Source of the DNA: Hypanus sabinus
Taxonomy: Eukaryota
Direction of reading: 5' to 3'
Assembly (NCBI RefSeq): GCF_030144855.1
Contig: NW_026778903.1
Location: 310,001 to 374,000 of the forward strand
DNA: 64,000 bases
In this document: positions 2,011 to 61,196 of the stretch, piece by piece
Numbering within the stretch: the stretch's first letter is position 1
How the letters are laid out: every line of letters begins with the position of its first letter
Translations under genes and position numbers: made by a program
Notes under the pieces: generated by a model
Told to the model about the DNA's origin: nothing
Database searches by the model: none
Seen by the model: only the letters and a program-made list of their open reading frames with translations

Positions 2011-2060
2011 TAACAGCTTCTTAAATGCACTTTGATCCAGAAGCTACAACAATGCATCAT

Positions 2061-4542
2061 GTTCCCAGTGTGGGTCTGACCCAGGGGTACGGAGACTGGA
2101 ACTGTGCACGGTGCTCCCAGCGTGGGTCTGATCCAGGGGTACGGAGACTGGAACTGTGCACGGTGCTCCCAGTGTGGGTCTGACCCAGGGATACGAAGAC
2201 TGGAACTGTGCACGGTGCTCCCGGTGTGGGTCTGACCCAGGGATACGGAGACTGGAACTGTGCACGGTGCTCCCGGTGTGGGTCTGATCCAGGGGTATGG
2301 AGACTGGAACTGTGCACGGTGCTCCCGGTGTGGGTCTGACCCAGGGATATGGAGACTGGAACTGCGCACGGTGCTCCCGGAGTGGGTCTGACCCAGGGGT
2401 AGGGAGACTGGAACTGTGCACGGTGCTCCTGGTGTGGGTCTGACCCAGGGATACGGAGACTGGAACTGTGCACGGTGCTCCCGGTGTGGGTCTGATCCAG
2501 GGGTATGGAGACTGGAACTGTGCACGGTGCTCCCGGTGTGGGTCTGACCCAGGGATATGGAGACTGGAACTGCGCACGGTGCTCCCGGAGTGGGTCTGAC
2601 CCAGGGGTAGGGAGACTGGAACTGTGCACGGTGCTCCTGGTGTGGGTCTGACCCAGGGATACGGAGACTGGAACTGTGCACAGTGCTCCCGGTGTGGGTC
2701 TGACCCAGGGATATGAGACTGGAACTGTGCACGGTGCTCCTGGTGTGGATCTAACCCAGGGATACAGTGATTGGAACTGTGCACGGTGCTCCTGGTGTGG
2801 GTCTAACCCAGGGATACAGTGACTGGGACTGTGCACGGTGCTCCCAGTGTGGGTCTGACCCAGGGATACGGAGACTGGAACTGTGCACGGTGCTCCTGGC
2901 GTGGGTCTGACCCAGGGATACGGAGACTGGAACTGTGCACGGTGCTCCCGGTGTGGGTCTGACCCAGGGACACGGAGACTGGAACTGTGTACGGTGCTCC
3001 CGGTGTGGGTCTGACCCAGGGATACGGAGACTGGAACCGTGCACGGTGCTCCCGGTGTGGGTCTGACCCAGGGACACGGAGACTGGAACTGTGTACGGTG
3101 CTCCCGGTGTGGGTCTGACCCAGGGATACGGAGACTGGAACCGTGCACGGTGCTCCCGGTGTGGGTCTGACCCAGGGATACGGAGACTGGAACCGTGCAC
3201 GGTGCTCCCGGCGTGGGTCTGACCCAGGGATACGGAGACTGGAACCGTGCACGGTGCTCCCGGTGTGGGTCTGACCCAGGGATATGGAGACTGGAACTGC
3301 GCACGTTGCTCCCGGTGTGGGTCTGACCCAGGGATACAGTGACTGGAACCGTGCATGGTGCTCCCGGTGTGCGTCTGACCCAGGGATACAGTGACTGGAA
3401 CCGTGCATGGTGCTCCCGGTGTGGGTCTGACCCAGGGATACAGTGACTGGAACCGTGCATGGTGCTCCCGGTGTGGGTCTGACCCAGGGATATGGAGACT
3501 GGAACCGTGCATGGTGCTCCCGGTGTGGGTCTGACCCAGGGATACAGTGACTGGAACTGTGCATGGTGCTCCCGGTGTGGGTCTGACCCAGGGATACAGA
3601 GACTGGAACTGTGCACGGTGCTCCCGGTGTGGGTCTGACCCAGGGATACGGAGACTGGAACTGTGCACGGTGCTCCCGGTGTGGGTCTGACCCAGGGACA
3701 TGGAGACTGGAACTGTGCACGGTGCTCCCGGTGTGAGTCTGACCCAGGGATACGGAGACTGGAACCGTGCACGGTGCTCCCGGTGTGGGTCTGACCCAGG
3801 GATACGGAGACTGGAACTGTGCACGGTGCTCCCGGTGTGGGTCTGACCCAGGGATAGGGAGACTGGAACTGTGCACGGTGCTCCCGGTGTGAGTTTGACC
3901 CAGGGATACGGAGACTGGAACCGTGCAGGGTGCTCCCGGTGTGGGTCTGACCCAGGGATACGGAGACTGGAACTGTGCACGGTGCTCCCGGTGTGGGTTT
4001 GACCCAGGGATACGGAGACTGGAACCGTGCACGGTGCTCCCGGTGTGGGTCTGACCCAGGGATACGGAGACTGGAACTGTGCACGGTGCTCCCGGTGTGG
4101 GTCTGACCCAGGGATAGGGAGACTGGAACTGTGCACGGTGCTCCCGGTGTGGGTTTGACCCAGGGATACGGAGACTGGAACCGTGCAGGGTGCTCCCGGT
4201 GTGGGTCTGACCCAGGGATATGGAGACTGGAACTGTGCAGGGTGCTCCCGGTGTGGGTCTGACCCAGGGATATGAGACTAGAACTGTGCACGGTGCTCCC
4301 GGTGTGGGTCTGACCCAGGGATATGAGACTGGAACTGTGCACGGTGCTCCCGGTGTGAGTCTGACCCAGGGATATGAGACTGGAACTGTGCACTGTGCTC
4401 CCGGTGTGGGTCTGACCCAGGGACACGGAGACTGGAACTGTGCACGGTGCTCCCGGCGTGGGTCTGACCCAGGGATACGGAGACTGGAACTGGGCACGGT
4501 GCTCCCGGTGTGGGTCTGACCCAGGGACACGGAGACTGGAAC
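2061..4542. repeat. 52-bp tandem satellite (roughly 48 copies) in PSMC4 intron 2
   Basis: Unit GGAGACTGGAACTGTGCACGGTGCTCCCGGTGTGGGTCTGACCCAGGGATAC; 52-nt period read directly (2221 vs 2273). Confidence 0.97.
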
Positions 4543-5048
4543 TCTGCATTGTTTTTATGCACAGGATTGTAACAAGCCCTTTTTCATGACACTTATTCAT
4601 TCTGTGTGTCTGCCTTGGAGAATAAATTTGAAGTGCCACGGTCTTAAGGTGCTGCTTCCGCACTGAACGATCCTCTGACCTGATGGGTTTCGTCCAAAGG
4701 TGAAACAACCACTGTAAATGAATGTGTGTGTGAAGAGCAGAATCTGGGGAGGGGCGAGAATGAAGCAGGATTGGTGTCCACGGTCTGGTCAGAAAACTCG
4801 ATGGGCCAAAGGGCCTGTTTCTTCATGATACGACAATGATCTTTGACCAACGGGAGCTTAGAGGGACTGGGAAACAAAGGAAGCAGAGGTCAAAACCCAT
4901 CAGGATAAACCGTATCCAATTCCCGGTCCAACACCTCAGACAAGCACAGGGGAGGCTATTCTGCCCCTCTGAACAGTACCCACCCCACCCTCTCTGTAGC
5001 CCTACCTTGCACAGACCACTCAATGGGTTCAGAACCCCTCCCCCTCAC

Positions 5049-5422: not shown

Positions 5423-6671
5423 CAGGCATGGGCAAACTACGGCCCGCAGAACTTGATGAAATTATATTAATAAACCTTAACGTTTTTTCCCCGCAATTCT
5501 GGCGTTTTCCCAATAGATGACGCACTCTATATACATTTGTGGCGACCCATTTCCTGGCACATCCGAACCGGCTCACAATTAGCCAGCGTTCCGGCTAAGG
5601 GAGATAGCCTGCAGGGATCTGCGAGCACAGAGCTTTGGAGCCTCTGCGCCACGGGGGGCAGGTTGAGGGAGGCTTAAAAGTGAGGCTGGGGATTTGGAAT
5701 AAAGTTTTTTTCTTCGACTGCAGTTACCGACTCCGTGTCTTAATTTTAGCGCTGCATGTAGCACACCGCTACACATTGACCTTTGTTGAGGTGCAGCGTA
5801 TTACTCCACATTTGCGCTTTACTCTTTGTTCGGCTCGACCTATTTGTGTGAACAGGCATTCAGCGTCATGAACATCAACAAAGCCAGCCACAGATCCAAG
5901 TTAACTGACTAATACCTCAGATCCATCCTGAGAATTGTCACAACAAAACTAAATCCAGTCTTTGATGCGCTGGCTAAAAAGGGAGACCAACAACACTGTT
6001 CCCACTGAAATTAAAAATAAGTTTCTTCGTTGTGTTATGTAAAAAATGCATTTGAAAATATTTTTTTTCAATAAGCCTTACATGTTACATGTCATTTCTG
6101 TTAAGTGATGGACATGAGTAGTGCGCAGGTGCAAGTACGTTCTCAAAATAAAAAATGCGCTCCAGATCAAATAACGCGCTCCGCATACTGTCGCGCTGTC
6201 CCTGTTCTGTCCTTGTGCTGGTCGTTGTTGAGTTTTGGCACAGGGGACAATTGAATAAGAAGGAGCAGGACAAGTAGACCTGCATCTCCTACCGTTTTTG
6301 AAATAAAGACAGTCAGGAGGAGAGTGATGATGATAATATCTTGAAGGATAACAGAATTTTCAGTGCTTTAAAATAATAACTGTTACTATTAAAAAAAGCT
6401 GTATTTTATTCATTTAATTTTCAGTGTTTTAAAAGTCATTTCAATAAATAGCTAAATACCATGGGACTTCAAAGACAGATATTTTGTTGTAATGCATTTG
6501 TTCATTTTCAATTGAAATTAAAGCACATGTTTACTACATATCCCATGATATTTTATTTTCTCTTATGAGGTGTATTACCAAAACACTCCATCCATCTGCT
6601 GCTGGTCCGGCCCCCCTGTCAAATTTTAGAACCCTTTGTGGCCCACAAGTCAAAAAGTTTGCCCACCCCTG
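5423..6671. mobile_element. Non-autonomous hAT DNA transposon
   Basis: Imperfect TIRs CAGGCATGGGCAAACT / AGTTTGCCCACCCCTG; perfect 8-bp TSD CCCTACAC (5415-5422, 6672-6679). Confidence 0.9.
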
Positions 6672-6779
6672 CCCTACACCATACCCTTGTCCTTCTGCCC
6701 TTTGTTCTACCCTCATTTAACTTGCTTCATTCCCCTTCTGACCTCTTCACTCCTGCTCTCCTTACTCTCCTCAAGCTTT

Positions 6780-7570
6780 CCTGCAACTTTTCCTCTTCCC
6801 CCCTCCTCCCCACCCTCCCCTTCACTCTCATCATCCCTCCCCCTCTCTTTCCCCTACGTCACCCTTCCCTCTCTTCCCCTTTCTCCTCTCTTCCCCCGCC
6901 CTCTCCTTCCACCTCCATCCCCCTTTCTCCTCTCTTCCCCCGCCCTCTCCTTCCACCTCCATCCCCCTTTCTCCTCTCTTCCACCTGCATCCCCCTTTCT
7001 CCTCTCTTCCCCCCGCCCTCTCCTTCCACCTCCATCCCCCTCTCTCCTCTCTTCCCCCGCCCTCTCCTCCTCCTTCCCTCTCTTCCCCTTTCTCCTCTCT
7101 TCCACCTGCATCCCCCTTTCTCCTCTCTTCCCCCCGCCCTCTCCTCCCCCTTCCCTCTCTTCCCCTCTCTCCTCTCTTCCCCCTGCCCTCTCCTCCTCCT
7201 TCCCTCTTCCCCTTTCTCCTCTCTTCCCCCACCCTCTCCTCCCCTTCCCTCTCTTTCCCTCGCCCTCTCCTCCCCTTCCCTCTCTTCCCCTCTCTCCTCT
7301 CTTCCCCCCGCCCTCTCCTCCTCCTTCCCTCTCTTCCCCTCTCTCCTCTCTTCCCCCCGCCCTCTCCTCCTCCTTCCCTCTCTTCCCCTTTCTTCCCCCC
7401 AACCCTAACCCTTCCACCTCCATCCCTCTTTCTCCTCTCTTCCACCTGCATCCCCCTTTCTCCTCTCTTCCCCCTGCCCTCTCCTCCTCCTTCCCTCTCT
7501 TCCCCCCCGCCCTCTCCTTCCCCTCCATTTCCCTTTGGCCTCTGCTCCATTCTCCCTCCCTCCCTCCTGC
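6780..7570. repeat. Polypyrimidine (CT-rich) low-complexity tract in PSMC4 intron 1
   Basis: Almost only C/T on + strand; recurrent CCTCTCTTCCCCC units. Confidence 0.95.
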
Positions 7571-7579
7571 AGTCTCGTT

Positions 7580-7780
7580 ACTCCCCCAATGACGAGGTTG
7601 CCGTCCCGGATCGCGGGCTATCTGAACGCTGCCTGCTTCCCCGGGACCCGTCCGCTTCCTTACCACCGGCCGCTCCACCGCCAAGCCCAGCTCCTCCATG
7701 GCTGTCGATTCCGCCGTGTCACTCGCACTTCCGCCGGAAGCCGGCCGCCGGGGGCGGGGCCTATTCCACAGAAGTTTGGA
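7580..7780 (-). promoter_or_regulatory. CpG-island promoter of PSMC4
   Basis: CpG-rich; CACTTCCGCCGGAAG ETS-type sites and GGGGCGGGG GC box just upstream of the ATG. Confidence 0.6.
7664..7699 (-). CDS. PSMC4: PSMC4 coding exon 1
   Basis: ATG..MEELGLAVERPV|gtaagg; 36 nt, same codon count as human MEEIGILVEKAQ; phase 0 fits exon 2. Confidence 0.9.
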
Positions 7781-8729
7781 CAACTTTGTCGCTGCCCTCT
7801 AACTTTCTCCACCTGCCTTCACCTCTGGACACACATTTATCTTTTACAAGCAGGGTCCTATCACTAAACTCACCCCTGTTCCAAATCACCCTTTCCCCCA
7901 GCCCGGCCCAACCACTACTCTCCGCTTTCAGTCGGGATCGATCCCCTCGCCCATTCGGCTCTCCGCGCTGATCTTGCGCCTGCCTCTTATCCCCCGATCG
8001 AGTTAGAAATGCCGCACTTCCTCACTCACCACCGTTCAGGGCCCCAAACAGTCCTTCCGGGTGAGGCGACCCTTCACCTGCGAGTTTCTCGGGATCATCT
8101 GCTGGCTTGGGTAATGCTGCTATTGTTCCGGTAGGCCTGTGAGTCCCTGAGATCCAAGAAGGACCCCGTCTGAATTGTGGCCACTTGGCGCTCAGCTCAG
8201 GGTAGGGCCGCCCATGGTCAAGGGGGGAAGGGGGAGGTTGGTTCCAGACAGAGAGCGATCCAGCCAATGACCCCAACGGTACATCACACACCACAACGGC
8301 AGTGAAGGTGCGGTTCCCAGTCAATGCCACTGGACTCTGATCCCAATCTGTCAGGGTCCATGTGGTGGCTGCCCGTGCATCAGCCTCCCCACGCTAAACA
8401 AAGACGCACATGAGCGTTATCAATTAAGAGAATAATTATTACTGAGAGAGAGAGCCTGTGGGACGTCAAAGTGCTGGGTTATGGTCTGATGGACGGTCTT
8501 TGGGGTCTTGCTAGTGCCTGTGTGGTGGGTGCAATCTGATGCTTCCCGCTGGAACAAGAGGGGAAGGAGGAGGGGGAAGGTTGCTGCTACGCTGCTGCTT
8601 GTGTGTGAGAGGAGTAGGGGGACTGAGGGGTTCTAACTTTTTTCCTATCATTCATCCTTTGGGGTTTCCTTCTGTTTTGTCGATGTCTGTGAAGAGTAAG
8701 AATTTCAGGTTGTGTACTGTATACATTCT

Positions 8730-25139: not shown

Positions 25140-26530
25140 TACATGAATATAGACAATAGGTGCAGAAGTAGACCATTCGGCCCTTTGAGCCTGCACTGCC
25201 ATTTTGAGATCATGGCTGATCAACTACTATCAATACCTGGTTCCTGCCTTGTCCCCGTATCCCTTGATTCCCCTATCCATAAGATACCTATCTAGCTCCT
25301 TCTTGAAAGCATCCAGAGAACTGGCCTCCACTGCCTTCTGAGGCAATGCATTCCAGACCCCCACAATCTGGGAGAAGAAGTTTTTCCTTAACTCTCTCCT
25401 AAATGACCTACCCCTTATTCTCAAACCATGCCCTCTGGTACTGGACTCTCCCAGCATCTGGAACGTATTTCCTGCCTCTATCTTGTCCAATCCCTTAATA
25501 ATTTTATATGTTTCAATCCGATCCCCTCTTAATCTCCTTAATTCCAGCGTACACAAGCCCAGTCTCTCTAACCTCTCTGCGTAAGACAGTCCAGACATCC
25601 CAGGAATTAACCTCGTGAATCTACGCTGCACTTCCTCTACAGCCAGGATGTCCTTCCTTAACCCTGGAGACCAAAACTGTACACAATACTCCAGGTGTGG
25701 TCTCACCAGGGCTCTGTACAAATGCAAGAGGATTTCCTTGCTCTTGTACTCAATTTCCTTTGTAATAAAGGCCAACATTCCATTAGCCTTCTTCACTACC
25801 TGCTGCACTTGCTCATTCACCTTCAGTGACTGATGAACAAGGACCCCTAGATCTCTTTGTATTTCTCCCTTACCCGACTCTATGCTGTTCAGATAATAAT
25901 CTGCCTTCCTGTTCTTACTCCCAAAGTGGATAACCTCACACTTATTCACATTAAACATCATCTGTCAAGTATCTGCCCACTCACCCAGCCTATCCAAGTC
26001 ACCCTGAATTCTCCTAACATCCTCATCACATGTCACACTGCCACCCAGCTTAGTATCATCAGCAAATTTGCTGATGTTATTTTCAATGCCTTCATCTAAA
26101 TCGCTGATGTAAATCGTAGACAGCTGTAGTCCCAATACCAAGCCCTGTGGCACCCCACTAGTCACCACCTGCCATTCTGAGAAACACCCATTCACCGCTA
26201 CCCTTTGCTTTCTATCTGCCAACCAGTTTTCTATCCATGTCAATGTCTTTCCCCCGATGCCCTGAACTTTGATTTTACCCACCAATCTCCTATGTGGGAC
26301 CTTATCAAATGCTTTCTGAAAATCGAGGTACACTACATCCACTGGATCTCCATTGTCGAACTTCCTGGTTACATCCTCGAAAAACTCCAATAGATTAGTC
26401 AAGCATGATTTACCCTTGGTAAGTCCATGCTGGCTCGGCCGAATCCTATCACTGCTATCTAGTGATGCCACTATTTCATCCTTAATAATGGACTCTAGCA
26501 TCTTCCCCACCACCGATGTCAGGCTGACAG
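25140..26530 (-). mobile_element. Young 5'-truncated CR1 LINE
   Basis: ORFs 25965..26513 and 25230..25961 share a frame, split by one stop (WADT*QMM); YLDFQKAFDKVPH and KFADDTKLGG RT motifs. Confidence 0.95.
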
Positions 26531-35748: not shown

Positions 35749-38535
35749 TTTCTTTTTCAATCTTTTTATTATTGTTATTAATATCAACAAAATACAATTG
35801 ATACATAGATAATGGGATTACAAACATACACATTTCAACTGCACATGAAAGAATACATAAGCAATGATTACAGTATAAATGAGTATTCCCAAATCATGGA
35901 TGATACAATATATATATAAACAAGGCAATTCTAGGTATATCATAATATATAATAAAAAAACAGTAAAAAGAAAAAAAAATATGCAAAAAACTAATCTAAT
36001 AATCTAATAACGAAAAAAAAGCAAAAAAGGAAAAAGAGAAAAAGAAAAAACAAGGGCTGTTTATAATATCGCACAAGAATACAAAACCATCAGTGTCGTC
36101 AACTCCGATCCTCTCAACATAAATAAAATCAAAACTGGAAGATCAAATAGGCTTGAAACGGGTCATATTATATCATATGAAAATATTGAATAAATGGTCT
36201 CCATATCTTTTCAAATTTAATAGAAGTATCAAATACATCACTTCTAATTTTTTCTAAATTTAAACATAACATAGTTTGAGAAAACCAATGAAATACAATA
36301 GGAGGATTAATTTCCTTCCAATTCAACATCATAGATCTTCTAGCCATTAGAGTAAGAAACGCAATCATTCGGCAGGTGGAAGAAGATAAATGAAGTGAGT
36401 CCATCATTGGTAAACCAAAAATTGCGGTAATAGGATGGGGTTGTAAATCAATGTTCAATACCGCAGAGATAATATCAAAAATATCTTTCCAATATTTTTT
36501 CAAAAGCAGACACGACCAGAGCATATGTGTTAAAGACACTATTTCAGATTGACATCTATCACAAATAGGATTTATATAGGAATAAAAATGAGCCAAGTTA
36601 TCCTTGGACATATAGGCCCTATGTACAACCTTAAACTGTATTAATGAATGTTTGGCACATATAGATGATGTATTAACTAATTGAAGAATTCTATCCCAAT
36701 TCTCAATAGGAATAATAAGATTAAGCTCTCTTTCCCTATCATTTTTTGTCTTATAAAGGGGCTCAGAACGTATCTTCATAATTATATTATAAAGTTTTGA
36801 TATAAGCCCTTTTTGAAAAGGGTTTAATTCAAACAAACTCTCCAAAATACCTGAAGACACAAAATGTGGAAAAGTAGGAAGTACAGTATTTAAAAAAATG
36901 CCTAATCTGTAAATATCTAAAAAAATGAAATCTAGGCAAATTATATGTATTAGATAATTGCTCAAAAGACATAAAACAATTGTCCAAAAATAAATCAGAA
37001 AATCGTAGTAATCCCTTAGTCTTCCAAGTCGAATAAGCTTGGTCTATAATTGAAGGGTGGAAAAAACAATTGGATACAATAGGAATATTTAAAACAAACT
37101 GAGTCAACACAAAAATTTTCGAAATTGAAACCATATACGTAAAGTATGTTTAACTATCGGGTTGTCAATTCGCTTCGGCAATTTAGAAAGAGCAAAAGGG
37201 AGCGAAGTCCCCAAAATGGAACCCAGTGCAAAATCTGGTACCGATTTAATTTCCAGGCTCACCCAATGAGGGCTAAAAGATCCATCCCAATCTTTCAACC
37301 AACATATCAAATATCTAATATTAACTGCCCAATAATAAAATCTAAAATTAGGCAATGCTAACCCACCTTCCTTCTTTGCCTTCTGTAAATATATTTTACC
37401 TAACCTGGGATTTTTATTCTGCCATATATATGAGGAAATTTTTGAATCAACATTAGTAAAAAAAAAAGATTTCGGAATAAAAATTGGTACCGCTTGAAAA
37501 ATATATAAAAACTTAGGTAGGATTATTGCTATTAAGATGGTTATTTTACCTATCAGAGATAAAGATAATGGTGACCACTTAGTAAACAAGCATTTAATCT
37601 GATCAATTAAGGGTACAAAATTAACTTTAAATAAGTCTTTATGGTTTTTTGTGATTTTAATCCCTAAGTAAATAAAAGAGTCATTAACTAATTTAAAAGG
37701 TAAGTTTCCATAAATTGGGACCTGTCTATTTAAAGGAAACAATTCACTCTTATTAAGATTTAATTTATCTCCAGAAAAATCACTAAATTGAGCCAACAAT
37801 GATAAAACTACTGGAATAGATTTCTCAGGATTAGAAATAAATAATAATAAATCATCTGCATACAAAGATAACATGAGTATCTGTCCCACGATTAATACCA
37901 AGAATATCCTGTGATTCTCTGATAGCAATTGCCAAAGGTTCTAAAGCAATATCAAATAATAGTGGGCTAAGAGGACAGCCTTGTCTAGTGCCCCGAAATA
38001 AACGAAAAAAGGGAGATCTTTGATTATTAGTAAACACCAGTATGATAAATCAGTTTAATCCAGGAAATCCAGGACTAAAATTAAACTTCTCCAATATATT
38101 AAATAAGTAAGGCCATTCAACTCTGTCAAATGCTTTCTCCGCATCTAATGAAATAACACATTCTGAAATATTATGTGAAGGAGTATACACAATATTCAAT
38201 AACCTCCTAACATTAAAAAAAATTAACGATTTTTAATAAAACCGGTTTGATCTTCCGAGATAATTTGGGGTAATACCTTCTCCAACCTGGATGCAAGTAA
38301 CTTGGAAAAATCTTGGAATCTACATTCAATAAGGATGCGCAATCAGTAGGGTCTTTATCTTTCTTCAATATTAAAGAGATGGAAGCTCTATAAAAAGATT
38401 GTGGCAGATTGCCAAATCTAATTGCTTCTTCAAAAACAAGAGAGAGTAGCGGAAAAACATTTTTTAAATTCTGCTGTATGCCCATCCGGACCAGGTGCTT
38501 TCCCTGAATTCATGGAGGAAATAACCCCTTTGATT
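35749..38535 (-). mobile_element. 5'-truncated L1 (second family), frameshifted ORF2
   Basis: GKAPGPDG, GTRQGCPLSPLLF, LYADDLLL and CDRC..H..WSC motifs; 12-bp TSD TCTGCCCCCATC / TCTGCCGCCATC. Confidence 0.9.
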
Positions 38536-38789
38536 TCTGCCGCCATCAACCACCGTATTTTAATCATTCCCCAATTACCTCCAAGTTTAATACCGCTCTG
38601 ATCCTATCAGAATACGACCACCCATAAACCTTTGTCGCAACCTTCACTACTTTCCCCACCACCGCCTGTGCCCTTTTAAACTGAACACGGCGCGGAGCTC
38701 GCCGATTGTACTTCTTAAGGAACGAACCAGTCGCTGTCAATCACAGGTGTATAGCCAATCAGATGGGTGTATCAGACAGACCCCAGTGC

Positions 38790-39870
38790 ATTGATTGACG
38801 GAGGTGTTTGTGCCGGCAGGGTCTGCATTGAATGATGTGGAGAGGTCTGGAGAAAGGTGAGAAGTCGTCTTTCATTGTTCATCCCGAGCAGTTGCATGAC
38901 AGAGGACTCTCCCATCGCCGGGCTGTTCGCAGGGACACACAAGGAGACGGACATCAAGCGCAGCTGGCAGATCATCAACTCGGTGAAAGGCGCCATTTGG
39001 TCCGCCCGGACCCCACTGTTCATCGAGATGTCCGTGGATGGGAGCTGCCGTCTGGCGACAAGAGACCGTGCTGAGGGAGGGTCTGAAGCTTGGCTCGGGC
39101 ACCGCAGGGCTCGCTGAGGAAGGGGCCCAGTGCAGTGTTCCTTCACTACTGGAGAGGGAGGGGCCGGGTTGGGTGAAGAAGCCCCTCAATTGTTGTAGTA
39201 GTGTACGTGAGTGACAACGATCCTATTGGTGTTAAGGAATGGAATCGAACACTAATGAAAGCTTTGACTAAGAATTTAAGAATGAAAGGCCGCTTGTTCT
39301 TGTGTTTTTTTAAAATTATGAATAAAGATATTCTTCAACTATAAAAACGTTGACAAACCTTTGGAAATCCTTCTAAGCCAACACATCTCACCACAAATCC
39401 ATCGGGCAGTGGTCTGCGCGGAACTATCTGCAGACACTGCGGGACAGCGGCCGTGGGGTGAATCGCTGAGCAAACGGCAGAATGCCTCATCGCCAGATCG
39501 CAGTAACAAGCACAGAGTCATGCTGGGCTGGCGGTGAAAGTGTCCCTCCCGGTAAGAATCTTCCTCCATCATGACCACCACACGTTACCTTCGGGACGGC
39601 TGTGATCGAGAACAGACGGTCAGCGCCTCTTCGCAGACCGTGGATTCGCTCGGAGGGTGTGGAGACAGAAGCAAAGGTCTGAGTACCGGTTCATCCCCAT
39701 CAACTGTGAAACGAAGGATTCTCTGCGAAACAGACTATTTCCTGATCACACACAGACAGGCATCAAGTATTGCTGGAAGATGATCAGCTCGATGAAGGAC
39801 GTCCTTTGGTCTGTCGGGAATCTGTTGGTCTCTCCTGACGGTGAGATGTCGTTGGGAGAAAGTTGGTGAT
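38790..39870 (+). mobile_element. Two Tx1-like LINE 3' fragments
   Basis: WQIINSVKGAIWSAR and CWKMISSMKDVLWS motifs; AATAAA at ~39322. Confidence 0.7.
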
Positions 39871-39899
39871 TGGCACAGTCCAGGCCGCAGGAGGACGGA

Positions 39900-40096
39900 C
39901 TAAGGAAGTGTCCCGGGTCCGCCAGCAGTGCTCCGCCACTGTCTCCGTCCTTTCAGAGTCCGCACATTACGGAACTGAACTGGGTGCGCTGGTTCGCTCT
40001 TGCTCTTTGGGAGCCGATACGCGGTGGTCAGGAATAGCAGTGCGAGCGCCTTCAGGCTGAGCAGGATGTAAAGAGGCAGTGGCTCCCGGGGAGAAC
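39900..40096 (-). CDS. VJ-type receptor, TM/cytoplasmic exon with intramembrane Lys
   Basis: actctcag|GT TCT.., phase 1; GSPREPLPLYILLSLKALALLFLTTAYRLPKSK..GTLP*. Confidence 0.8.
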
Positions 40097-40165
40097 CTGA
40101 GAGTAAATCGGAGTTCAGAGTGAGACGGTTCACCGAGGCGAGCTAGGGATGGGATGTATTCCGAG

Positions 40166-40862
40166 TGTAAAGGGCGGGTTTCTTCTTTTTTTTGTTACTG
40201 TTGGGAAAGGGTTTCTTTGTTTTGTTTACAGGAATGTTTATTTGTTGCGAGAGAGTGCTGGAAGCTTGTTTGTTAAAATTTACTGATAACAAGAATGGTA
40301 TTCCTTTGTAAACCAAATGGGGATTAATGTTCATTCCTCTGAGTCTGTAAACTATTGTTGACGGGCTTTTGGGCAGATCGGCGCGAGGGAGTCGAGAGAG
40401 AGGACGCAATGATGTAAGCTGGGCGAGGATCGGACCCCAAGCGGGGGTCCGAGGCCAGGAGGTCTCCGAGGAGGGGGGATGAAGCTAGATGTGCTTGGTT
40501 GACCACTCGGAGGGTCCTGAGCTGCGAGTCGAGGAGTTCGGAGGGGATCGAATGGTGGCCAGAAGACTTCAGTAATTGAGCTCCAACGGCTGTGCACGAA
40601 GTGGTTTGGACTTTGATAAGTTTGGCGCCTTTTCTTTATTTTTTTCATATATACTGTATCGTTATTAATCACTTAGTTATAGTAACCTTTATAAATTGTA
40701 CTCATTTAATCGCATATGGTGTGCTGTCTGTTTTTGGGCGAGGCGGGGACATCACACAGCATCCACACCAGCTGATTACCCAGTTTGGCGGGGCCGAAGG
40801 CTGCTCCCCCTAGGCCTAGACGAAACGAGCTGAGCGAGCCTGAGGCGACCCAGGGGGTTACA
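40166..40862. mobile_element. Solo LTR (inverted relative to 23186-23883)
   Basis: TGTAA..TTACA termini; 4-bp TSD CGAG. Confidence 0.9.
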
Positions 40863-41047
40863 CGAGGGTTCAGGGGTTTATGTATAGAATCACATTGCTG
40901 GGAGTGGACCACAGGCTGGGATCTAATCCGAGCGTTCAGCGGGATAATATATATGAAATAACAGAACTGGACATGCGGTCCAATCCCAGGAGGAATCAGG
41001 GAAGCGGCGGTGGAAAGTGAACCAGGGGAGAGATACCGGAGACTCAC

Positions 41048-41407
41048 CTCGTACCAGGAGCACGGTCCCGTTCCCTCGGAGCAGCAGCTGCCGGTCGGGA
41101 AGGTGAACGGACGCCAGGCAGCGGTAGGTGTTGGAGTGGCTCGGGCGGAGGTGCCGGAGTTGGAGGGAGAGTCCCGCGCCGATCTCACTCTCAGGTAGGG
41201 CGGCTTCCTGCTGGGATTCCTTGGGGGGCGGGTAGACGACACGTTCCTCTTCCCCCTCCCCCGTCCCGCCGATCACCCAGTAGGGGTAGATTATCACCCG
41301 GGGTTCCGTCAGCCCCAGAACTTCGCAGTGCAGCGTCACGTTGGAGCCACTCGGGACCTCCAACCTCTGAGGCAACTGGGACACGTGGAGGGTGGCCAGG
41401 GAGCTGT
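41048..41407 (-). CDS. VJ-type Ig V exon (V1), CD28H/NKp30-like
   Basis: gtgacag|360 nt|gtgagt, phase 1-1; VSQLP..VTLHC..YW..LSLQL..TYRC..GNGTVLLVR. Confidence 0.9.
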
Positions 41408-42708
41408 CTGTCACATAGTGAGGGAGGGAGAATGGTGAGGCAGCGTCTGTAACACATAGAGGGAAGGAGAGAGAGAGGTGCATGAGTGAGTTTCTGTAAT
41501 ACATTGAGGGATGGAGAGTGACGAGTAATCGTCTAACACATGTAGAGAGGGAGTCGTGAGGGAGGGTCTGTAATACAAGGAGGGAGGGAGCATAATGAGG
41601 GAGCATCTGCAACACATGCAAATAGGTAGAGAGATTAGATAGGGAGCGTCTGTAACACTTTGAGGAAGGGAGAAAATAGTGAAGGACAGAGCAGGGCAGA
41701 GATTAAATGTGGAGTGTTATCAAACTGTAAGGAACGAGTTAAACAATATTCGTTCTTAGTATGTGCTAAAATAAAAAAGGAAGTCTGCCAGACAAGATGG
41801 TGTTAATCCGGAGCGGAACGGATCTGAGAAAGTGGAAGGAGTACAAGTCTCCAGCCTGGAGAGTAGATCATGATTAATACAAGTTTGTGTCGGGAAGGCG
41901 AGGCCTTTGTCCAGGTATCAAATTGTGACCCATCAGAGAGAGTTCTAGCGTGAGAGTTGTGTTAGAGTTTTAAAGGATATCGAATGGAGGTAGTACGGGT
42001 AAATCTTTGTGTCAGTCGGGAGAATTTTCTATCAGACCACGTTACAACCAGTGATAATGATAAGAATTGGGGGAGATAGAGAAAAGTACGTCCAGTGAGA
42101 GAGAGATGAAAGTTTGTGGGATCTGTGATTCCTTCCGGTATCTGCATATCAGCTCGTTCAGTGGATGGGAAGTGTTTGTTTCTCGCGACATCATTAACAC
42201 TTCGTTTTTCTTCTTGCATTACATGGTTATATAATTATAATAAAACAATTTATTTTAGTTTAACGTGTGTACAGTTGTCCCCTTTGTTTGTCAATACAGA
42301 CCCGAATGCATATTGCTGAATCAGTAAAGAACACGGAACGAACTTTCAAACAATTATCGTCAGGCAAACACAGCCCAAAATGGGGCAAACTCTGCCAAAC
42401 CCTCCCACTTCTCCCCATGTCCTTCCTCCCATTCAACCCGTGTCCATGACATTTCCCTTCCCTGCCCTCCACAGGCGTCCCCTCCTCCCTCTCTCCCACC
42501 GCGATTCTCCAGCTCCCTCATCCCCTCAGACTTGCACAATTCATCGAAAGATACACAGATGTACTGCCCATGATCCGGTTAGAGACTGGGATCTAACCCA
42601 GCAAGTCAGGAAAATTATATATATTAAAGCGGAACAGGATATTGTATTGGATCCCAGTAGGCAATCGGGAATCCGCGGGGATTAAGGGCAGTGGGACCGG
42701 AGACTCAC

Positions 42709-43068
42709 CTCGTACCAGGAGCACGGTCCCGTTCCCTCGGAGCAGCAGCTGCCGGTCGGGAAGGTGAACGGACGCCAGACAGCGGTAGGTGTTGGAGTGG
42801 CTCGGGCGGAGGTGCCGGAGTTGGAGGGAGAGTCCCGCGCCGATCTCACTCTCAGGTAGGGCGGCTTCCTGCTGGGATTCCTTGGGGGGCGGGTAGACGA
42901 CACGTTCCTCTTCCCCCTCCCCCGTCCCGCCGATCACCCAGTAGGGGTAGATTATCACCCGGGGTTCCGTCAGCCCCAGAACTTCGCAGTGCAGCGTCAC
43001 GTTGGAGCCACTCGGGACCTCCAACCTCTGAGGCCACTGGGACACGTGGAGGGTGGCGAGGGAGCTGT
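42709..43068 (-). CDS. VJ-type Ig V exon (V2)
   Basis: gttacag|360 nt|gtgagt; 3 nt differences from V1 (one L/W replacement). Confidence 0.9.
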
Positions 43069-43901
43069 CTGTAACACAGTGAGGGAGGGAGAATGGTGAG
43101 GCAGCGTCTGTATCTCAGAGAGGGAGGGAGTGTAGTGAGGTAGCGTCGTAACACATGGAGTGTGGGAGAGGGTAGTGAAGGACTGTCTGTTCACAGGGGA
43201 GAGGATAGGAGTGCAGAGAGTAAACGTGGAGTGATAACTGTAAGGAAAGAGTTAAACATTATTCGTTCTTGGTATGTGCTGAAATAAAAAGGAAGTCTGT
43301 CAGACAACATGGTGTTAACCCGGAGTGGAACTGATTTGAGAAGGTTGAATGAGTACCAGTCTCCAGCCTGGAGAGTAGATCATGCTGAATTCAAATTTGT
43401 GTCGGGAAGGCGAGGCCTTTGTCCAGGCACCAAATAGCGTTCTGGTGTAAGAGTTATGTTAAGAGTAAGAGTTTTAAAGGGATATTGAAGAATATTAATA
43501 CGGGTAAATCTTTTTGTAAATGGGGAGATTTTTCCATCAGACCACGTTATGACCAGTGATAACGGTAAGAGTTGGGGAAGATAGCGGTGAGGGAGCGTCT
43601 GTAACCGGTGAGGGAGCGGAGCGGGGCAGAGAGTGACCCGGATGCATTGTCCAGAACAGCTCGAAGTCAGGCAACCTCTGCCCAATATCAACCAGTTCCT
43701 CTGCCGACGACCCCTGACCTTTCCCGAATCCATGACATTCCTCTGTCAACAACACGCGCCCCTTCTCCTTCACCCCTACATTGACATCCTAACTCATTCA
43801 CCCGAAAACGACGGAATTTCTTCCCAACACTCCGCCCCTTCATGCGTACTATCACTCAATGGGGAACGGGGCCCCACAGACACAGACTCTTTCTGTCATT
43901 T

Positions 43902-44047
43902 NNNNNNNNNNNNNNNNNNNNNNNNNNNNNNNNNNNNNNNNNNNNNNNNNNNNNNNNNNNNNNNNNNNNNNNNNNNNNNNNNNNNNNNNNNNNNNNNNNN
44001 NNNNNNNNNNNNNNNNNNNNNNNNNNNNNNNNNNNNNNNNNNNNNNN
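43902..44047. other. Assembly gap (146 N)
   Basis: Run of N. Confidence 1.
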
Positions 44048-44056
44048 AGTTCTTAC

Positions 44057-44099
44057 CCAGTAGCAGGAGCAAGATCAGTTTCCGAAGCTGCGCCCTCAT
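44057..44099 (-). CDS. VJ-type receptor leader exon
   Basis: ATG..MRAQLRKLILLLLL G|gtaaga; 43 nt, phase 1 fits V exons. Confidence 0.8.
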
Positions 44100-44479
44100 C
44101 GCCCAGTTAAAGTATTTTCAATGAATACAGCTCTGAGGGCGCAAAAAGAAACTTAGCACAGTCTTGCCGGGCCGAAGGGACGCAATACCTTGCTGTAGTG
44201 AAATGCTCTGAATGGACGTGCAGAACAAAGTTTTTCACTGTGACAATAATAAACCAAGTTACCAGTTACATGTTTCAATTACAATATGCACACGTTGTCT
44301 CATTTAGGGAGCCGCGAACACAGCCCAAAGACTGACAAACTCTGCCCAGTACCCGTCCCCAACTCTCCCCGTGACCCCCCACCCAAACCTTCCATCCATA
44401 GCCATGACATTACACTCACCCCTATACACGCCCGCTCCATTTACCACACAGTCCTCCCAGCTCCCTCTTCCGAGTCAAG

Positions 44480-44880
44480 GCAGTAAATAGGAAACCGATA
44501 TCGCTGACATTGACGTTCAGTGTGCGTCTTCACGCTTCTGTACCTTCTTCATCGTGGCGGCAATGAGAACTAGGCTTCAGCTTAATGTAGAGGGAGTAGA
44601 GCAGTGGGTTAAGCACACATCCCAGAGGGGCGCCGGTGTTGTCAGCGAAGTGGAGATGTTATTTCCGATCCACACAGACTGTGGTCTCCAGCTTGGTAAG
44701 TCGAGGATCCAGTTGCAGAGGGAGGTACAAAGGCCCCGGTTCTGGAGCTTTTTGCTCAGAACTGAGGAAAGATTGTATTCAATGCTGAGCTGTGGTCAAT
44801 AAACAGCAACCTGTCATGGCTATTTTTATTGTCCACGTGATCTGAGGCCGTGTGAAGAGTCTTTGAGATCGCATCCTCCG
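44480..44880 (-). mobile_element. L2/Rex-type LINE fragment
   Basis: Similar to 30860-31590 and 60500-60800. Confidence 0.6.
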
Positions 44881-45244
44881 TAGACCTTCCTTAACCTGTC
44901 CCTTTCCAATCTATGTTTCTCTACTCTCTCTCTCTTTCTCTCATTATTCTGCCCCCTGTTCTTCTGTTTCGTTTCCCATCCCGGGCTTTCTCCCTCCTAA
45001 TACCCCAAGATATTTTTCCAGCCCACACTCCCTCCTTATGTCTCTCCCTCTCTATTCCTCACCCCATTCCCCCTCCTCTGCACTTGTCTCCTCCTCACAC
45101 TGCCCCTCTCTCTCTGCTCCCTCGATTTCCCTGAAACCCCACTCACTGCTCACATCCCCCACCTCCGCCTGGTATCATGTCCACCACATCCTGTTCACCT
45201 CTTGTTCCGCTCTCCCCTGTTTCGCTGTAACTAATTCACTGACC

Positions 45245-49864: not shown

Positions 49865-52800
49865 TGTCATCGGGTGGGCGTTGGGAGTGGACCCAAAAGC
49901 AAGACACAGACACTGAACTACCAGGAACAGGACTAGGCGTGAGAAGGAAGCAAGGAAAGTGGGGAAAATAGGACGCTGGACATGACACAGGCAGGCCCTG
50001 GACGAGACAAGGATTCCAGGCCTGAGCTCGGACTTGACGAGGATAGCGGAAACAGGACTTGGAACTGGGAACTAGGAGTCTGGGCTTGGACTCCGAGCCA
50101 GAGACTAGACAAGGACCCAGAACATGGCTCTTGACGCGGGCTCGGACCCCAGAACCCGGCGAGGACAAGACGTGGCTACAGGACGAGGAGAGGCACAGGA
50201 CTGGATGAGAGACTCCTGGACGGGACAAGGGAACCCCAACACAGGACGAGGGAATCCCAGCACCGGGCTGGGCAAGGTACTCCTGGGCTGGGTGAGGCAC
50301 ATGGACATGACGGGAGCACAGGGTCTTGGTCGAGAGAGGACAGGAACATGGAACACCAAGCCGGGACCCCTCCTTGGCTACAGGACGTAGGGCCAGGACT
50401 CGTTACACAGAACACAGAGCCGGGACCCCTCCCTGGGTACAAGAGGTAGGGCCGGGACTCATTTCACAGAACACAGAGCCGGGACCCCTCCCTGGGTACA
50501 AGAGGTAGGGCCGGGACTCATTACACAGAACGCTGAACACGACGAGACAGTTCCCAACGCTAGGTAGTGGCAAGATGGCCGGACCTTCGTAGCGAAGGCG
50601 TGGACACGACGAGACAGTTCCCAACGCTAGGTAGCGGCAAGATGGCGGGTCCTACCTAGCGAAGTCATGGACATGGAGAGGCAGTTGCAAAGAGGGAGAG
50701 GCTCCAGGCACTTGCAAGGCGAGGCAAGTCTCAACTGCCAAGCAAGAATTTTATGTGATCTTTCACCTAATTCGTAATATTTCAGTTTAGTTCTCATAAT
50801 TACTTTTTCTGTACGATATGTCTGGAGTGTATTATATTGTAGTTTTTTATTAACAAGTTGTCTTCGTTTTTCTTCTGTCATGTATCTTTGGGATTCTTTT
50901 TCTAACTTTATGATATCTTTTTCCAATTGATCTATTTCTGCCATGTATTCCTTCTTAATTTTAGATGTATAACTTATAATCTGACCCCTTAAGTATGCTT
51001 TCATCGCTTCCCATAATACAATTTTATCCTCAACTGAATGTAAATTTGTATCCAAAAAAAATTGAATCTGTTTTTTCATAAAATCACAAAAATCTTGGAC
51101 GTTTTAATAAAATTGAATTAAATCTCCATCTATAAATCGATTCCTCCTTATCCATCATTATCATTGTCATTATCAAGGGGGAATGATCTGACAGTATTCT
51201 TGCTTTATATTCCACACTTTTCACTCTATCTTGAATATTTTTTGATAATAAAAAAAATCAATCCTTGTGTAAGTTTTATCTCTATTTGAATAAAATGAAT
51301 AACTTCTTTCTCTTGGATTAATTTTCCTCCATATATCAATCAGGTTTAAATCTTTCATTAATGATAAAGTTAGTTTTATTACTTTTGATTTTGTAGCAAT
51401 TTTTGTTGACCTATCCAAAACTGGATCTAAACAAAAGTTAAAATCTCCACCTATTAATATTTTATCATGTGCATCAGCCAAGTTCAAAAAAACTTCATGT
51501 ATGAATTTTGCATCATTTTCATTTGGTGCATAAATGTTCATAAAAGTCCATAATTCTGAAAGAATTTGACAATGTATAATCAGATATCCCCCCCAGAATC
51601 TATTATTACATTTTGTATATTAATTGGTAAAGATTTATTAACCAAAATTGCAACTCCCCTCGATTTTGAATTAAATGAAGCTGCAATGACATTTCCAACC
51701 CAATCCCTCTTTAATTTCTTATGTTCTGTTTCTGTTAAATGTGTTTCTTGTAAAAAAAAAAGCTATATCTCCTTTCATTTTCATAATATATGTTAAAACT
51801 CTTTTTCTTTTCACAGGTCCACTAATTCCATTAATATTAAAACTTAAAAAATTAAGTAAATTAAGCATTCATAATACCTTGGGAACACTTTAAGATTCTC
51901 CATGTTGCTATGAGTTTCTCCCCAACCATCCAGGCAAAAAAGAAGAAAAATAGAAGAAAGATAACTAATATATAAGAAAAAAAAACAAAGTACCCCCACT
52001 AATGTTGTGAATAAAAAGAACATAACATTACCCCCCCCCATTGGGTAAAAGTGAAATTTTACCCCTTACCAAAGGAAATTATAATTAATGTCGATTAGTA
52101 ACTCAATTTCGATGGTCAATAAGCGGGATAAAATACTTAGGTATTAGAGTTGATTAAGATGTAAAAAATGTATATAATCAAAATTATTTGCCATTATTTA
52201 AAAAAATAAAAGAGGATCTTGATAAATGGATGATGTTACCAATAACATTAATAGGTAGAGTTAATGCTGTAAAAATGAATATATTTCCTAGATTGCAATA
52301 TTTATTTCAAACTTTACCAATACAATTACCTCAGAAGTTTTTTCAAGAACTGAATAAATATGTGAGGAAATTTCTTTGGAAAGGAAAGATGTCAAGAATA
52401 TCATTGGAAAAATTGACATGTAAACTTGATTTAGTAGGGTTACAACTTCCAAATTTTAAGAATTATCATAAAGCAAATCAACTTAGATTTATTGCGTCTT
52501 TTTTTGATGAAGAAAAACCGGCATGCATTGAAATAGAATTAGATAAGATAGGAGAAGATATACCAGAAGATTTTATATATATGAATGGGAATCTAAATGA
52601 TATGGGAAAAAAAGAATCTCCTATATTAAGACATTTGATTGATTTATGGAATAAGGTAAATATGGACGATGAGATAAAGAAATCTTTATTAGCAGAAAGA
52701 ACTTTAATTCAAAATAGGCTTATTCCTTTTACAATGGATAATAAACTTTTACATAATAGGTTCCAAAAGGGGATTAAATATTTAGGTGATTGTTTTGAAG

Positions 52801-54108
52801 GAGGTATATTGATGTCGTTTGATCAATTAAAAAATAAATATAAAATATCAAACAACACTCTTTTCTGTTATTTTCAATTAAAGGCTTATTTACGAGAAAA
52901 GCTGGGTCAAACAATGTTGATGCCAAAATCTAGTGAAATAGAAATATTAATTCGAAAAGGAAAAATTAAAAAAGTTACATCTTGTATGTATAATTTGATT
53001 CAAAAACAGACAATTAAATCAGGAATTCATAAATCGACAAAAATGGGAATTTGATTTGAATGTTAAAATTGATGGAAAAAAGTGGTCAACATTATGTTCT
53101 GATAGTATGAGAAATATAATAAATGTTCGACTTAGATTAATACAATATAATTTTTACAGTAATTATATATAACACCACAGAAAATAAATAGATTAAATTC
53201 AAATATGTCTGATCAATGTTTTCGATGTAATCAAGAAATTGGTACTTTTTTACATTCTACTTGGTCTTGTTTTAAAATTCAACCATTTTGGATAAATCTA
53301 AGACTTTTATTGGAACAAATTACTGGAGTACAACTCCCACATAGTCCAGTATTATTTTTCTTAGGAGACATTGAAGGGACAATACCGAAACTTAAATTGA
53401 ATACGTTTCAGAAAAAAATTATAAAAATTGCATTGTCAGTAGCCAAAAAAGTTAACGCAGTTACTTGGAAATCTGATTTATATTTAACTATGGATCGTTG
53501 GAATAATGAAACACATAGTTGTATTCCACTTGAAAAAATTACATACAATCTAAGAAACGAATATGATATATATTTGAAAATTTGGCTCCCATATCTACAA
53601 AAGACAGGATTAAATACATAACTCCTTTGAAGGTAAAATTATAAAGTAATTGGGGAAGTAAAAATAAATATTAAAATTATTTTGAACCATGGAGCATGTG
53701 GGAATCCTCCGATATCCAGGCAATCTCTCTTTTTCTTTCTTTCTTTAGATAAGGGTTAAGGGGGGAGGGTTAATATTATTTTTCTCACTGTTTATCATCA
53801 CATTTATTCTTTGTAACTTTCTAAAATTTAATAAATAAATATTTTTTTTTAAAGGCGAGGCAAGGCTCCAGGCAGAGGCAAGGCCAGGCGAGGCTCCAGG
53901 CAGGAAGATTAAGAGAAGGGATCCAGACAACGGACTTGGACAGGAACAATCCAGCAGGCAGAGGCTGAATCCTGAAGCTATTTATGAGGTCAGCCCTAAC
54001 AAGAATCAGCTGCCTCAACAGAATCTGGGGAAACCGGGAAATCCTGGAATTAGGTATCAGGACTGTACCCCGAACCGGAATGCGGATTTCACAGACCGGA
54101 CCATGACA
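49865..54108. mobile_element. Solo LTR-like element interrupted by L1
   Basis: Inverted termini TGTCAT..ATGACA; internal ~60-bp repeats; the two halves join across the L1 TSD. Confidence 0.65.
50729..53851 (+). mobile_element. L1 with 5' inversion (twin priming)
   Basis: Perfect 13-bp TSD AAGGCGAGGCAAG (50716-50728, 53852-53864); - strand EN domain (LQETH, NIYAPN, GGDFN) then + strand ORF2 C-terminus and AATAAA. Confidence 0.9.
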
Positions 54109-59814: not shown

Positions 59815-60820
59815 AGTACAAATTGAAGTAAATATAACAAAAATTTAAATTATAAATCATAATTAGAAAATAGAAAAGGGAAAGTAAGGTAGTGCAAGTC
59901 GGGTCCGGATATTTGGAAGGTACGGCCCAGATCCGGGTCAGGATCTGTTCAGCAGTCTTATCACAGTTGGAAAGAAGCTGTTCCCAAATCTGGCCGTACG
60001 AATCTTCAAGCTCCTGAACCTTCTCCCGGAGGGAAGAGGGACAAAAAGTGTGTTGGCAGGGTGGGCCGTGTCCTTGATTATCCTGGCAGCTCTGCTCCGA
60101 CAGCGTGCGGTGTAAAGTGAGTCCAAGGATGGAAGATTGGTTTGTGTGATGTGCTGGGCTATGTTCACGATCTTCTGCAGCTTCTTCCGGTCTTGGACAG
60201 GACAACGTCCATACCAGGTTGTGATGCACCCTAGAAGAATGCTTTCTACGGTGCATCTATAAAAATTAGTGAGGGTTTTAGGGGACAGGCCAAATATCTT
60301 CAGCTTTCTCAGGAAGTAAAGGCAATGGTGGGCCTTCTTGGCAGTGGACTCTGCTTGGTTAGACCAAGTCATGTCATTTGTGATATTCACCCCGAGGAAC
60401 AAGCTTTTGACCTGTTCCACCTGTGCACCACCGATGTAGATGCGGTCGTGCAGTCCGCTACTCCTGAAGTCAACAACCAATTCCTGACATTGAGGGATAG
60501 GTTATTGTCTTCGCACCATGCCACCAGGTTCTTAAATTCCTCTCTGTACTCAGACTCATCATTACCCAAGATATGGCCTACAATTGTTGTGTCATCAGCA
60601 AACTTATATATTGAGTCCGATGAAAACTTGGCTACACAATCGTGGGTGTACAGTGAGTACAGCAGGGGGCTGAGTAAACAGCCTTGTGGGGCACCAGTGC
60701 TCAGAGTGATTGTAGAGGAGAGCTTGTCCCCTATCTTTACAGCCTGGGTCCTGTCTGTGAGGAAGTTGAAGATCCAGCTGCAGATCTGAGTGCTGAGATC
60801 CAGGTTCTGGAGCTTAGGAA
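59815..60820 (-). mobile_element. L2/Rex-type LINE RT fragment
   Basis: [31 protein letters not shown]. Confidence 0.85.
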
Positions 60821-61196
60821 TCAATTAGATAGATTAGATATTTGCATTGATCGGGTGTAGGTAGAAGTGGCCACTAAGTGCAAATTTATCACTCAACTCC
60901 TCTTGCCATTTAAGGAGCAGCTCGTATCTGCTGCCTATTGTTGGTAACTGGTTTACGATTGTCACAAATACCAAGACACAGATCACGCGTTCATCTTCTT
61001 GGGTCCCAGACGTTTGGTGATGGCGGGACAGACGTTGTCCTTGAGTCTGGTTGGACCAGTTTGAACTGTTTGTATCTTCTGCTGACGGGCAGTGGAAGAG
61101 GAGAGAATGTATAAGTGCCAAGGGTCCTGAATTCTGGGGATAGTGGGATCTCACTGTGCGTAGACAGCCCACAATGTTCTGTGTGGTCCAACCTTC

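Follow-up and report, generated by a model that had tools for sequence, protein, structure and literature searches.

A tandem V-domain receptor gene with a transmembrane lysine in the ray Hypanus sabinus and its unnamed elasmobranch family

A 64,000-nucleotide (nt) stretch of the genome of the ray Hypanus sabinus (NCBI RefSeq assembly GCF_030144855.1, contig NW_026778903.1, positions 310,001 to 374,000; hereafter the window, whose internal numbering is used for all coordinates) carries on its minus strand an intact gene for a protein with two tandem immunoglobulin (Ig)-type variable (V) domains and a lysine within its transmembrane (TM) segment. The locus is LOC132385340, for which RefSeq already has a predicted two-V 'uncharacterized protein'; the novelty lies in how the family is read. 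As judged by sequence comparison, the gene belongs to an unnamed elasmobranch family, the members of which have a single V domain in catshark and between two and five in myliobatiform rays. Its product is probably an adaptor-coupled activating receptor, in which near-identical V domains would engage a conserved ligand multivalently and in which the number of V copies and the linkers between them would tune the reach of the molecule.

Gene structure and the elasmobranch family

The gene structure and the type of the domains were established directly from the window, and the elements of the gene are listed below, with a slash at each exon boundary.

Leader exon, 44057-44099, minus strand: 43 nt, from the ATG to the donor G/gtaagaac; encodes MRAQLRKLILLLLL and the first base of the next codon.
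Assembly gap, 43902-44047: 146 N, inside intron 1; the only run of N in the window.
V2 exon, 42709-43068, minus strand: 360 nt, phase 1-1; acceptor ...gtgttacag/AC, donor CGAG/gtgagt; Pfam V-set.
Optional 39-nt 5′ extension of V1, 41408-41446, minus strand: upstream in-frame acceptor at 41446, giving a linker of 13 amino acids (aa; AASPFSLPHYVT plus one residue); used by the RefSeq model.
V1 exon, 41048-41407, minus strand: 360 nt, phase 1-1; same boundaries as V2.
Stalk, TM and tail exon, 39900-40096, minus strand: 197 nt; acceptor ctctcag/GT; stop codon TAG at 39900-39902.
TM helix LPLYILLSLKALALLFLTTAY, 40017-40079, minus strand: Lys codon at 40050-40052; indicated by hydropathy and by the only confident helix in the full-length structure model.

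The splice sites of the leader, V2, V1 and TM/tail exons are canonical, and every junction is in phase 1. Joining the four exons gives an open frame of 960 nt and 319 aa, and the exons lie exactly where the initial annotation, made from the letters of the window, had placed them in its in-frame splice (43+360+360+197 = 960 nt, 319 aa). The length of the product given there holds in part, because the 319-aa frame is open but the database model uses the acceptor 39 nt upstream of V1: the leader, V2, V1 from acceptor 41446 and the TM exon together reproduce the RefSeq protein of Hypanus sabinus letter for letter (332 aa). The frame is also open when the leader is joined to V1 and the TM exon, so that a single-V form generated by exon skipping, as had been suggested, is possible.

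Each V exon is unbroken and encodes the B-strand Cys (NVTLHC), YPYW, YRC and then the G strand RGNGTVLLVR, in keeping with the canonical Cys/Trp/Cys and the joining (J)-like strand that had been claimed for it, and the Pfam matches on the V domains are to V-set and Ig_3 only. A search of positions 39000-45000 on both strands detected no recombination signal sequence (RSS), that is, no heptamer with a nonamer (>= 6/9) at a spacer of 11-13 or 22-24 nt. Because of this directly established lack of an RSS and because the J-like strand lies inside the V exon, the V domains are germline-complete and non-rearranging, which upholds the original description of them as VJ-type.

In addition to the TM segment, the last exon encodes a stalk without Cys and a 42-residue tail. 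The segment LPLYILLSLKALALLFLTTAY is hydrophobic despite its Lys, with a best 19-residue Kyte-Doolittle mean of 1.90, and the Lys is located centrally, at position 10 of 21. When the tail was scanned for the immunoreceptor tyrosine-based inhibitory, switch and activation motifs (ITIM, ITSM and ITAM, respectively), none was present, and the only Tyr of the tail is at the membrane boundary (AYRLP). The TM Lys and a tail free of ITIM and ITAM had been recognized from the outset; the Lys proves to be central and to be conserved out to the catshark. Downstream of the stop codon, no AATAAA or ATTAAA is present within 900 nt (39000-39899) and the first such signal is at 38591, which implies either that the 3′ untranslated region extends over ~1.3 kb or that the poly(A) signal is a variant one.

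The leader exon occurs as a single copy in the window, and a search for a second leader or TM exon, in the intervals separating V2, V1 and the TM exon as well as in the remainder of the window, found none. The leader donor is followed by 9 nt and then by the assembly gap, which therefore falls within intron 1 and leaves the reading frame unaffected. V2, V1 and the TM exon are contiguous independently of the gap, so that the prospect, raised initially, of V1 and V2 becoming separate genes upon closure of the gap is not borne out. The physical continuity of the leader and V2 is not proven by sequence; the leader is nevertheless a good candidate for the first exon of the same gene, because it is on the same strand, has a compatible phase, is the sole leader and encodes the same peptide that precedes the V domains in two other rays.

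An exhaustive phmmer search of 1.84 billion representative proteins with the V domain as the query returned only 17 proteins at E <= 1e-3, the best match being an 'uncharacterized protein' of Hemitrygon akajei with three V domains (E = 3.7e-211, 94% identity). The relatives in three species are as follows.

Hemitrygon akajei: a three-V gene (XP_0729114xx isoforms) and a 307-aa two-V paralogue; all unnamed.
Mobula hypostoma: adjacent five-V and two-V genes (LOC134350234, LOC134350235); all unnamed.
Scyliorhinus torazame (catshark): GCB59757, a 175-aa single-V protein; unnamed.

The leader (in the rays), the V domain, the PRE..PLPLY stalk, the central TM Lys and the short tail are shared by these relatives and the Hypanus gene, whereas the number of V domains (1, 2, 3 or 5) and the inter-V linker (0, 13, 28 or 41 aa) differ. 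The Hemitrygon proteins have an identical leader peptide, and those of Mobula a near-identical one that is longer by one or two residues. The isoforms of the three-V Hemitrygon gene differ from one another only in their inter-V linkers, which have 0, 13, 28 or 41 aa and in which modules of the 39-nt type serve as the linkers of 13, 28 or 41 aa. In the five-V model of Mobula, the last V is frameshifted and the model stops before the TM segment. The catshark protein is colinear with V1, stalk, TM and tail (38% identity over 153 aa, pairwise E = 1e-25), and both the PRE..PLPLY stalk and the TM Lys line up in the alignment. The tail of the Hypanus protein extends 25 residues past the conserved ...SEPAHPV.

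A multi-V product is thus backed by gene models from three ray species, and a two-V ectodomain, which was at first considered unusual, is not so in this family, because two to five V domains are the norm in stingrays and devil rays. In a word-indexed protein search, the V domain alone matched nothing and the catshark protein matched only itself; look-ups in the ESM Atlas gave generic V-set clusters only, and a search of the literature found no paper on this family or on its variable tandem-V architecture.

Duplicated V exons, linker modules and conservation

The V1 and V2 exons are identical at 357 of 360 nt (99.2%), with one amino-acid difference (L vs W). Within ~40 nt on either side of the exons, identity drops to 60-90% with indels, and because the flanking introns are diverged in this manner, V1 and V2 can be regarded as two genuine genomic copies. 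The V exons are far more alike than the introns that flank them, synonymous sites included, and this excess of similarity fits homogenization (gene conversion) acting on top of purifying selection. Two further elements are related to the V exons.

Tandem repeat of 39 nt, in frame, three copies, 43054-43169, minus strand: at the 3′ end of intron 1; contains an alternative acceptor, the first exon base of which is 43107.
Relic of a third V exon, 15283-15414, plus strand: only the 5′ part is left; 73-75% identical; carries a frameshift and a stop.

A second acceptor, in frame and with a strong pyrimidine tract, is located exactly 39 nt upstream of both V exons (43107 and 41446), and its use inserts a 13-residue linker rich in Pro and Ser. 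Modules of 39 nt, each with an ...acag/AC acceptor, precede each V exon (43054-43169 and 41408-41680). The array 5′ of V1 is more decayed, was missed by the repeat finder and is an apparent one only; the frame upstream of V1 is open for ~70 codons. The relic at 15283-15414 is probably a leftover either of a second gene of the family, as is found in other rays, or of a tandem V array. The stretch that precedes it (14995-15166) resembles the intron 3′ of V1.

The conservation of the V domains, the stalk and the Lys was likewise established directly. V domains are 83-96% identical among the rays (Dasyatidae, Mobulidae) and 34-40% identical to that of the catshark. Among the rays, no variation is seen in strands B, C, E, F and G or in the equivalents of the first and third complementarity-determining regions (CDR1 and CDR3), and the differences fall almost entirely within the acidic C'-C''-D stretch. 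All six family proteins aligned (6/6), that of the catshark included, have the TM Lys. The tail, which has 17 residues in Hemitrygon and ~14 in catshark, is conserved only to ...SEPAH (its first ~15 residues), past which the Hemitrygon protein ends two residues on, that of Mobula diverges and that of Hypanus adds 25 unconserved residues. A tree of individual V domains resolves only three pairs, namely Hypanus V1 and V2, V1 and V2 of Hemitrygon gene 1, and Mobula V4 with V2 of Mobula gene 2; the C'' signature (PEGSRQ vs KESQQ type), compared by eye only, hints that the V domains may be orthologous by position. Taken together, the conservation of V, Lys and tail corresponds to a receptor whose binding surface is fixed, whose buried charge is essential and whose tail has no signalling capacity of its own, and the near-invariant V loops among rays suggest that the ligand may be conserved.

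Affinities of the V domain

The single V domain was modelled by AlphaFold as a standard V-set fold with a predicted local distance difference test (pLDDT) score of 84.6. Foldseek searches of Swiss-Prot models and the PDB, together with VIA-align, gave equally good matches across many V-set proteins at 13-30% identity, including D1 of SIRP, T-cell receptor (TCR)-alpha, kappa and lambda V, IgNAR V, PD-1, VSTM4, IGSF6, NCR3, TMIGD2, CD7, CD8-beta and CTLA4, and the VIA-align Z scores (12.6-13.3) were alike for PD-1, light chains, TCR, IgNAR and SIRP. Among solved structures, the best Foldseek match was SIRP D1 (23-26% identity), and in profile and single-sequence searches of PDB sequences TCR-alpha and light-chain V ranked first. 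The NCR3 entries were at Foldseek ranks 21-29 (19-23% identity, E ~6e-6), with human NCR3 at rank 23 (23% identity); TCR-alpha, SIRP and kappa V were placed ahead of them. No NCR3, CD28, TMIGD2 or Siglec match and no large elasmobranch family was present among the 17 proteins found by phmmer at E <= 1e-3. No single named family stands out by sequence or by fold.

The gene had initially been placed in the group of CD28, CTLA4, CD28H and NKp30 on the basis of its single-exon VJ domains. This placement is not sustained: the hallmarks of CD28 are absent, the phmmer search gave no match to NCR3, CD28 or TMIGD2, and a single-exon VJ domain does not define that group, because it is shared by SIRP, CD8, CD7 and PD-1, all of which are equally good fold matches. 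The Hypanus protein resembles CD28, CTLA4 and CD28H (TMIGD2) in its one-exon VJ-type V domain, and the fold match to TMIGD2 has 26% identity; it differs in having more than one V and in lacking the CDR3 motif, the Tyr-based tail motif and the stalk Cys. Proteins in the CD28 family carry a single V domain, a CDR3 motif (MYPPPY, EIP(PP) or PPP) before GxG and Tyr-based motifs in the tail (PMC11599192). Membership of this family, taken as CD28, CTLA4, ICOS, CD28H, CD28X and PD-1, was rejected, because the stretch from Cys to GxG, LASVHLPDRQLLLR, has no MYPPPY, EIP(PP) or PPP motif, the tail has no YxNx, YEDM or ITIM/ITSM, and the rays have two to five V domains, not one.

The likeness to NKp30 (NCR3) consists in a one-exon VJ-type V domain and, directly after it, a stalk, a TM segment that contains a basic residue, and a short tail. 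The G strand of NKp30 carries a GNGT motif, and an Arg that lies close to the outer end of its TM segment pairs with CD3-zeta or FcR-gamma. The two differ in that the charge in Hypanus is a central Lys and not an outer Arg and in that the V domain is in tandem in rays; moreover, the Hypanus V domain is no closer in sequence or fold to NKp30 than to other V domains. SIRP-beta has a TM Lys, a short tail and coupling to an adaptor (DAP12), and its D1, a non-rearranging VJ-type domain, belongs to the type that gave the best Foldseek match among solved structures. However, SIRP is built as V-C1-C1 and the Hypanus protein as V-V without a C domain, and the sequence signal shared by the two is only that of a generic V-set.

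The closest matches outside the cartilaginous fishes are VJ-C1-TM proteins of paddlefish (LOC121298714), coelacanth (LOC102360497) and tarpon (MATL_G00124470), with ~30-37% identity in the V domain. These proteins of basal bony fish, which are unnamed, have short tails and may be of the PRARP group, resemble the Hypanus protein in a GNGT/GDGT motif and in an (E/H)P..LY motif where the TM segment begins, whereas they have a C1-type domain (a Pfam C1-set match was obtained for coelacanth only) and no charged TM residue. The comparison hints that the family may have been derived from a VJ-C1-TM ancestor by loss of C1 and gain of the Lys. Two V domains in tandem on one chain are also found in the VCBPs of amphioxus, which are secreted and have a chitin-binding domain, and in NAR-TcR and TCR-mu, which rearrange and have C domains; the likeness of all of these to the Hypanus protein is one of architecture, namely the tandem double V.

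Proposed mechanism, alternatives and significance

The protein is predicted to be a type I membrane protein with an ectodomain of tandem VJ-type V domains, a short Cys-free stalk, a TM segment with a central Lys and a tail without signalling motifs. The buried Lys would pair with the Asp of an ITAM adaptor dimer, which by position and residue would be of the DAP12 type, an adaptor of the FcR-gamma/CD3-zeta type being a less likely partner, and without this pairing the receptor would neither be expressed at the surface nor signal. V domains that are repeated and hardly vary would allow multivalent binding of a conserved ligand, and the number of V copies, with the optional 13-aa linker modules, would tune reach and valency. 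Given the central, conserved Lys and a tail in which ITIM and ITAM are lacking, the protein is most reasonably read as an adaptor-coupled activating receptor, and the activating function initially proposed is retained on these grounds; the adaptor pairing, the signalling and activating function, the ligand, and the expression or cell type are what we infer. The features of the adaptor-coupled class, which includes activating KIR, SIRP-beta, TREM and NKp44, namely a buried basic TM residue and a short tail that lacks both ITIM and ITAM, are present in the Hypanus protein, and every family member that retains the TM/tail exon has the TM Lys and no ITIM. Association with FcR-gamma or DAP12 through a basic residue in the TM segment is an established principle (PMC4016189). 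A search of the literature on DAP12 in cartilaginous fish, on PRARP and on MDIR found nothing usable.

Several observations weigh against an adaptor-coupled, multivalent activating receptor. Neither the window nor the set of relatives yielded an inhibitory (ITIM) counterpart; in the adaptor-coupled class a paired counterpart of this type is common, but it is not obligatory. Near-invariant binding loops are unusual for natural killer (NK)-type receptors that face pathogens. The multi-V proteins cited in support are pipeline predictions, and the assembly gap in intron 1 may hide one or more additional V units. In addition, the AlphaFold model of the full-length two-V protein has a pLDDT of 36 and is uninformative on the arrangement of the domains, so that it allows no statement on V-V packing.

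One alternative is a divergent member of the NKp30/NCR3 family that has been internally duplicated in rays and binds a B7H6-like ligand. Such a protein would explain the shared plan of a non-rearranging VJ-type V domain, stalk, TM with a basic residue and short tail, as well as the GNGT motif in common with NKp30, and NCR3 is among the fold matches (E ~6e-6, 19-23% identity). Shark NCR3 is said, in work of Kinlein and co-workers from 2021, to be a multigene family with highly divergent subtypes. We consider this origin unlikely, because the exhaustive phmmer search gave no NCR3 protein at E <= 1e-3 in a comparison outside of which the divergent shark subtypes lay, because NCR3 ranks by fold behind TCR-alpha, SIRP, VSTM4, IGSF6 and kappa V, because the Lys here is central whereas NKp30 has an outer TM Arg, and because no relative is called NCR3-like by its source. 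Nurse shark NCR3 genes are listed under MT914154-914161 (PMC12227049). Somewhat less likely still is a non-signalling adhesion or co-receptor subunit, the Lys of which would serve assembly with a non-ITAM membrane partner, candidates being a CD3-like module or the tetraspanin web, as for the multi-V EWI/IGSF3 proteins. The strong conservation of the V loops across rays would fit a fixed self ligand, and the weak matches include multi-V IGSF3-like and SIRP-like proteins; however, the EWI motif is absent, and adaptor-coupled receptors are classically marked by a central Lys together with a very short tail.

A more far-reaching proposal, which we hold to be improbable, is that the family is an offshoot, specific to elasmobranchs, of ancient non-rearranging VJ(-C1)-TM relatives of antigen-receptor precursors, in which C1 was lost, the Lys was gained, the VJ exon was multiplied and V-V pairing as in a single-chain Fv is set by the linkers. 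Adjacent V domains on one chain would then pair via their GFCC' faces to form single-chain Fv-like binding sites, and the 39-nt acceptor modules (0, 13, 28 or 41 aa) would set intrachain vs interchain V pairing; if this were true, the geometry of a binding site would be changed by a germline-encoded mechanism based on splicing. It is very improbable that the two-V arrangement is a duplicate created by mis-assembly beside the gap and that the true product has one V: the near-identity of the V exons (99.2%) and the distance of 0.8 kb to the gap would be expected of such a duplicate, but the introns on either side share only 60-90% identity and are set apart by indels, and genes with two to five V domains, among which some have clearly diverged, occur in two further ray species. 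Hardly credible, finally, is an origin of the V exons as germline-joined relics of rearranging Ig or TCR segments. TCR-alpha and kappa V are indeed the best sequence matches among solved structures, but the identity to TCR and Ig V domains is just 17-28%, no better than that to SIRP or PD-1; furthermore, there is no RSS, the V exons are spliced to a TM exon without any C domain, and the family has been kept as a receptor from catshark to rays.

Apart from the gene and the V relic, the window is rich in retroelements and other repeats.

Interspersed repeat in the intron between V1 and the TM exon, 40186-40863, no strand assigned: ~700 nt, 92% identical to 23185-23873 in inverted orientation.
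Minisatellite, ~2000-4700, minus strand: long array of ~52-nt units with open reading frames (ORFs) in several frames, the longest of 883 codons, in which ...PGSDPHREHRAQFQSPYPWVRPTPGAPCTVPVSVSLGQTHTGSTVHSSSL... recurs; most likely a non-coding satellite.
Strand-skewed low-complexity block, 6600-7800: GC skew -0.55; pseudo-ORFs rich in Pro/Ser/Leu and in Gly/Glu/Arg on opposite strands.
ORF fragments of the reverse-transcriptase/LINE type: 25230-26513 (minus strand), 36168-37928 (minus strand), 52188-53621 (plus strand) and 59938-60824 (minus strand).

The innate activating receptors of cartilaginous fish have barely been charted, and non-rearranging VJ-type domains bear on the origins of antigen receptors. 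A single-exon VJ domain with a charged TM residue does not by itself identify relatives of NKp30 or CD28. The family described here exhibits multiplication of a VJ-type V exon within a gene, from one to five copies, on a lysine anchor; the copies appear to be kept near-identical by selection together with homogenization and are joined by linker modules that can be selected by splicing. The gene of Hypanus sabinus is a concrete candidate for a DAP12-type activating receptor in rays.

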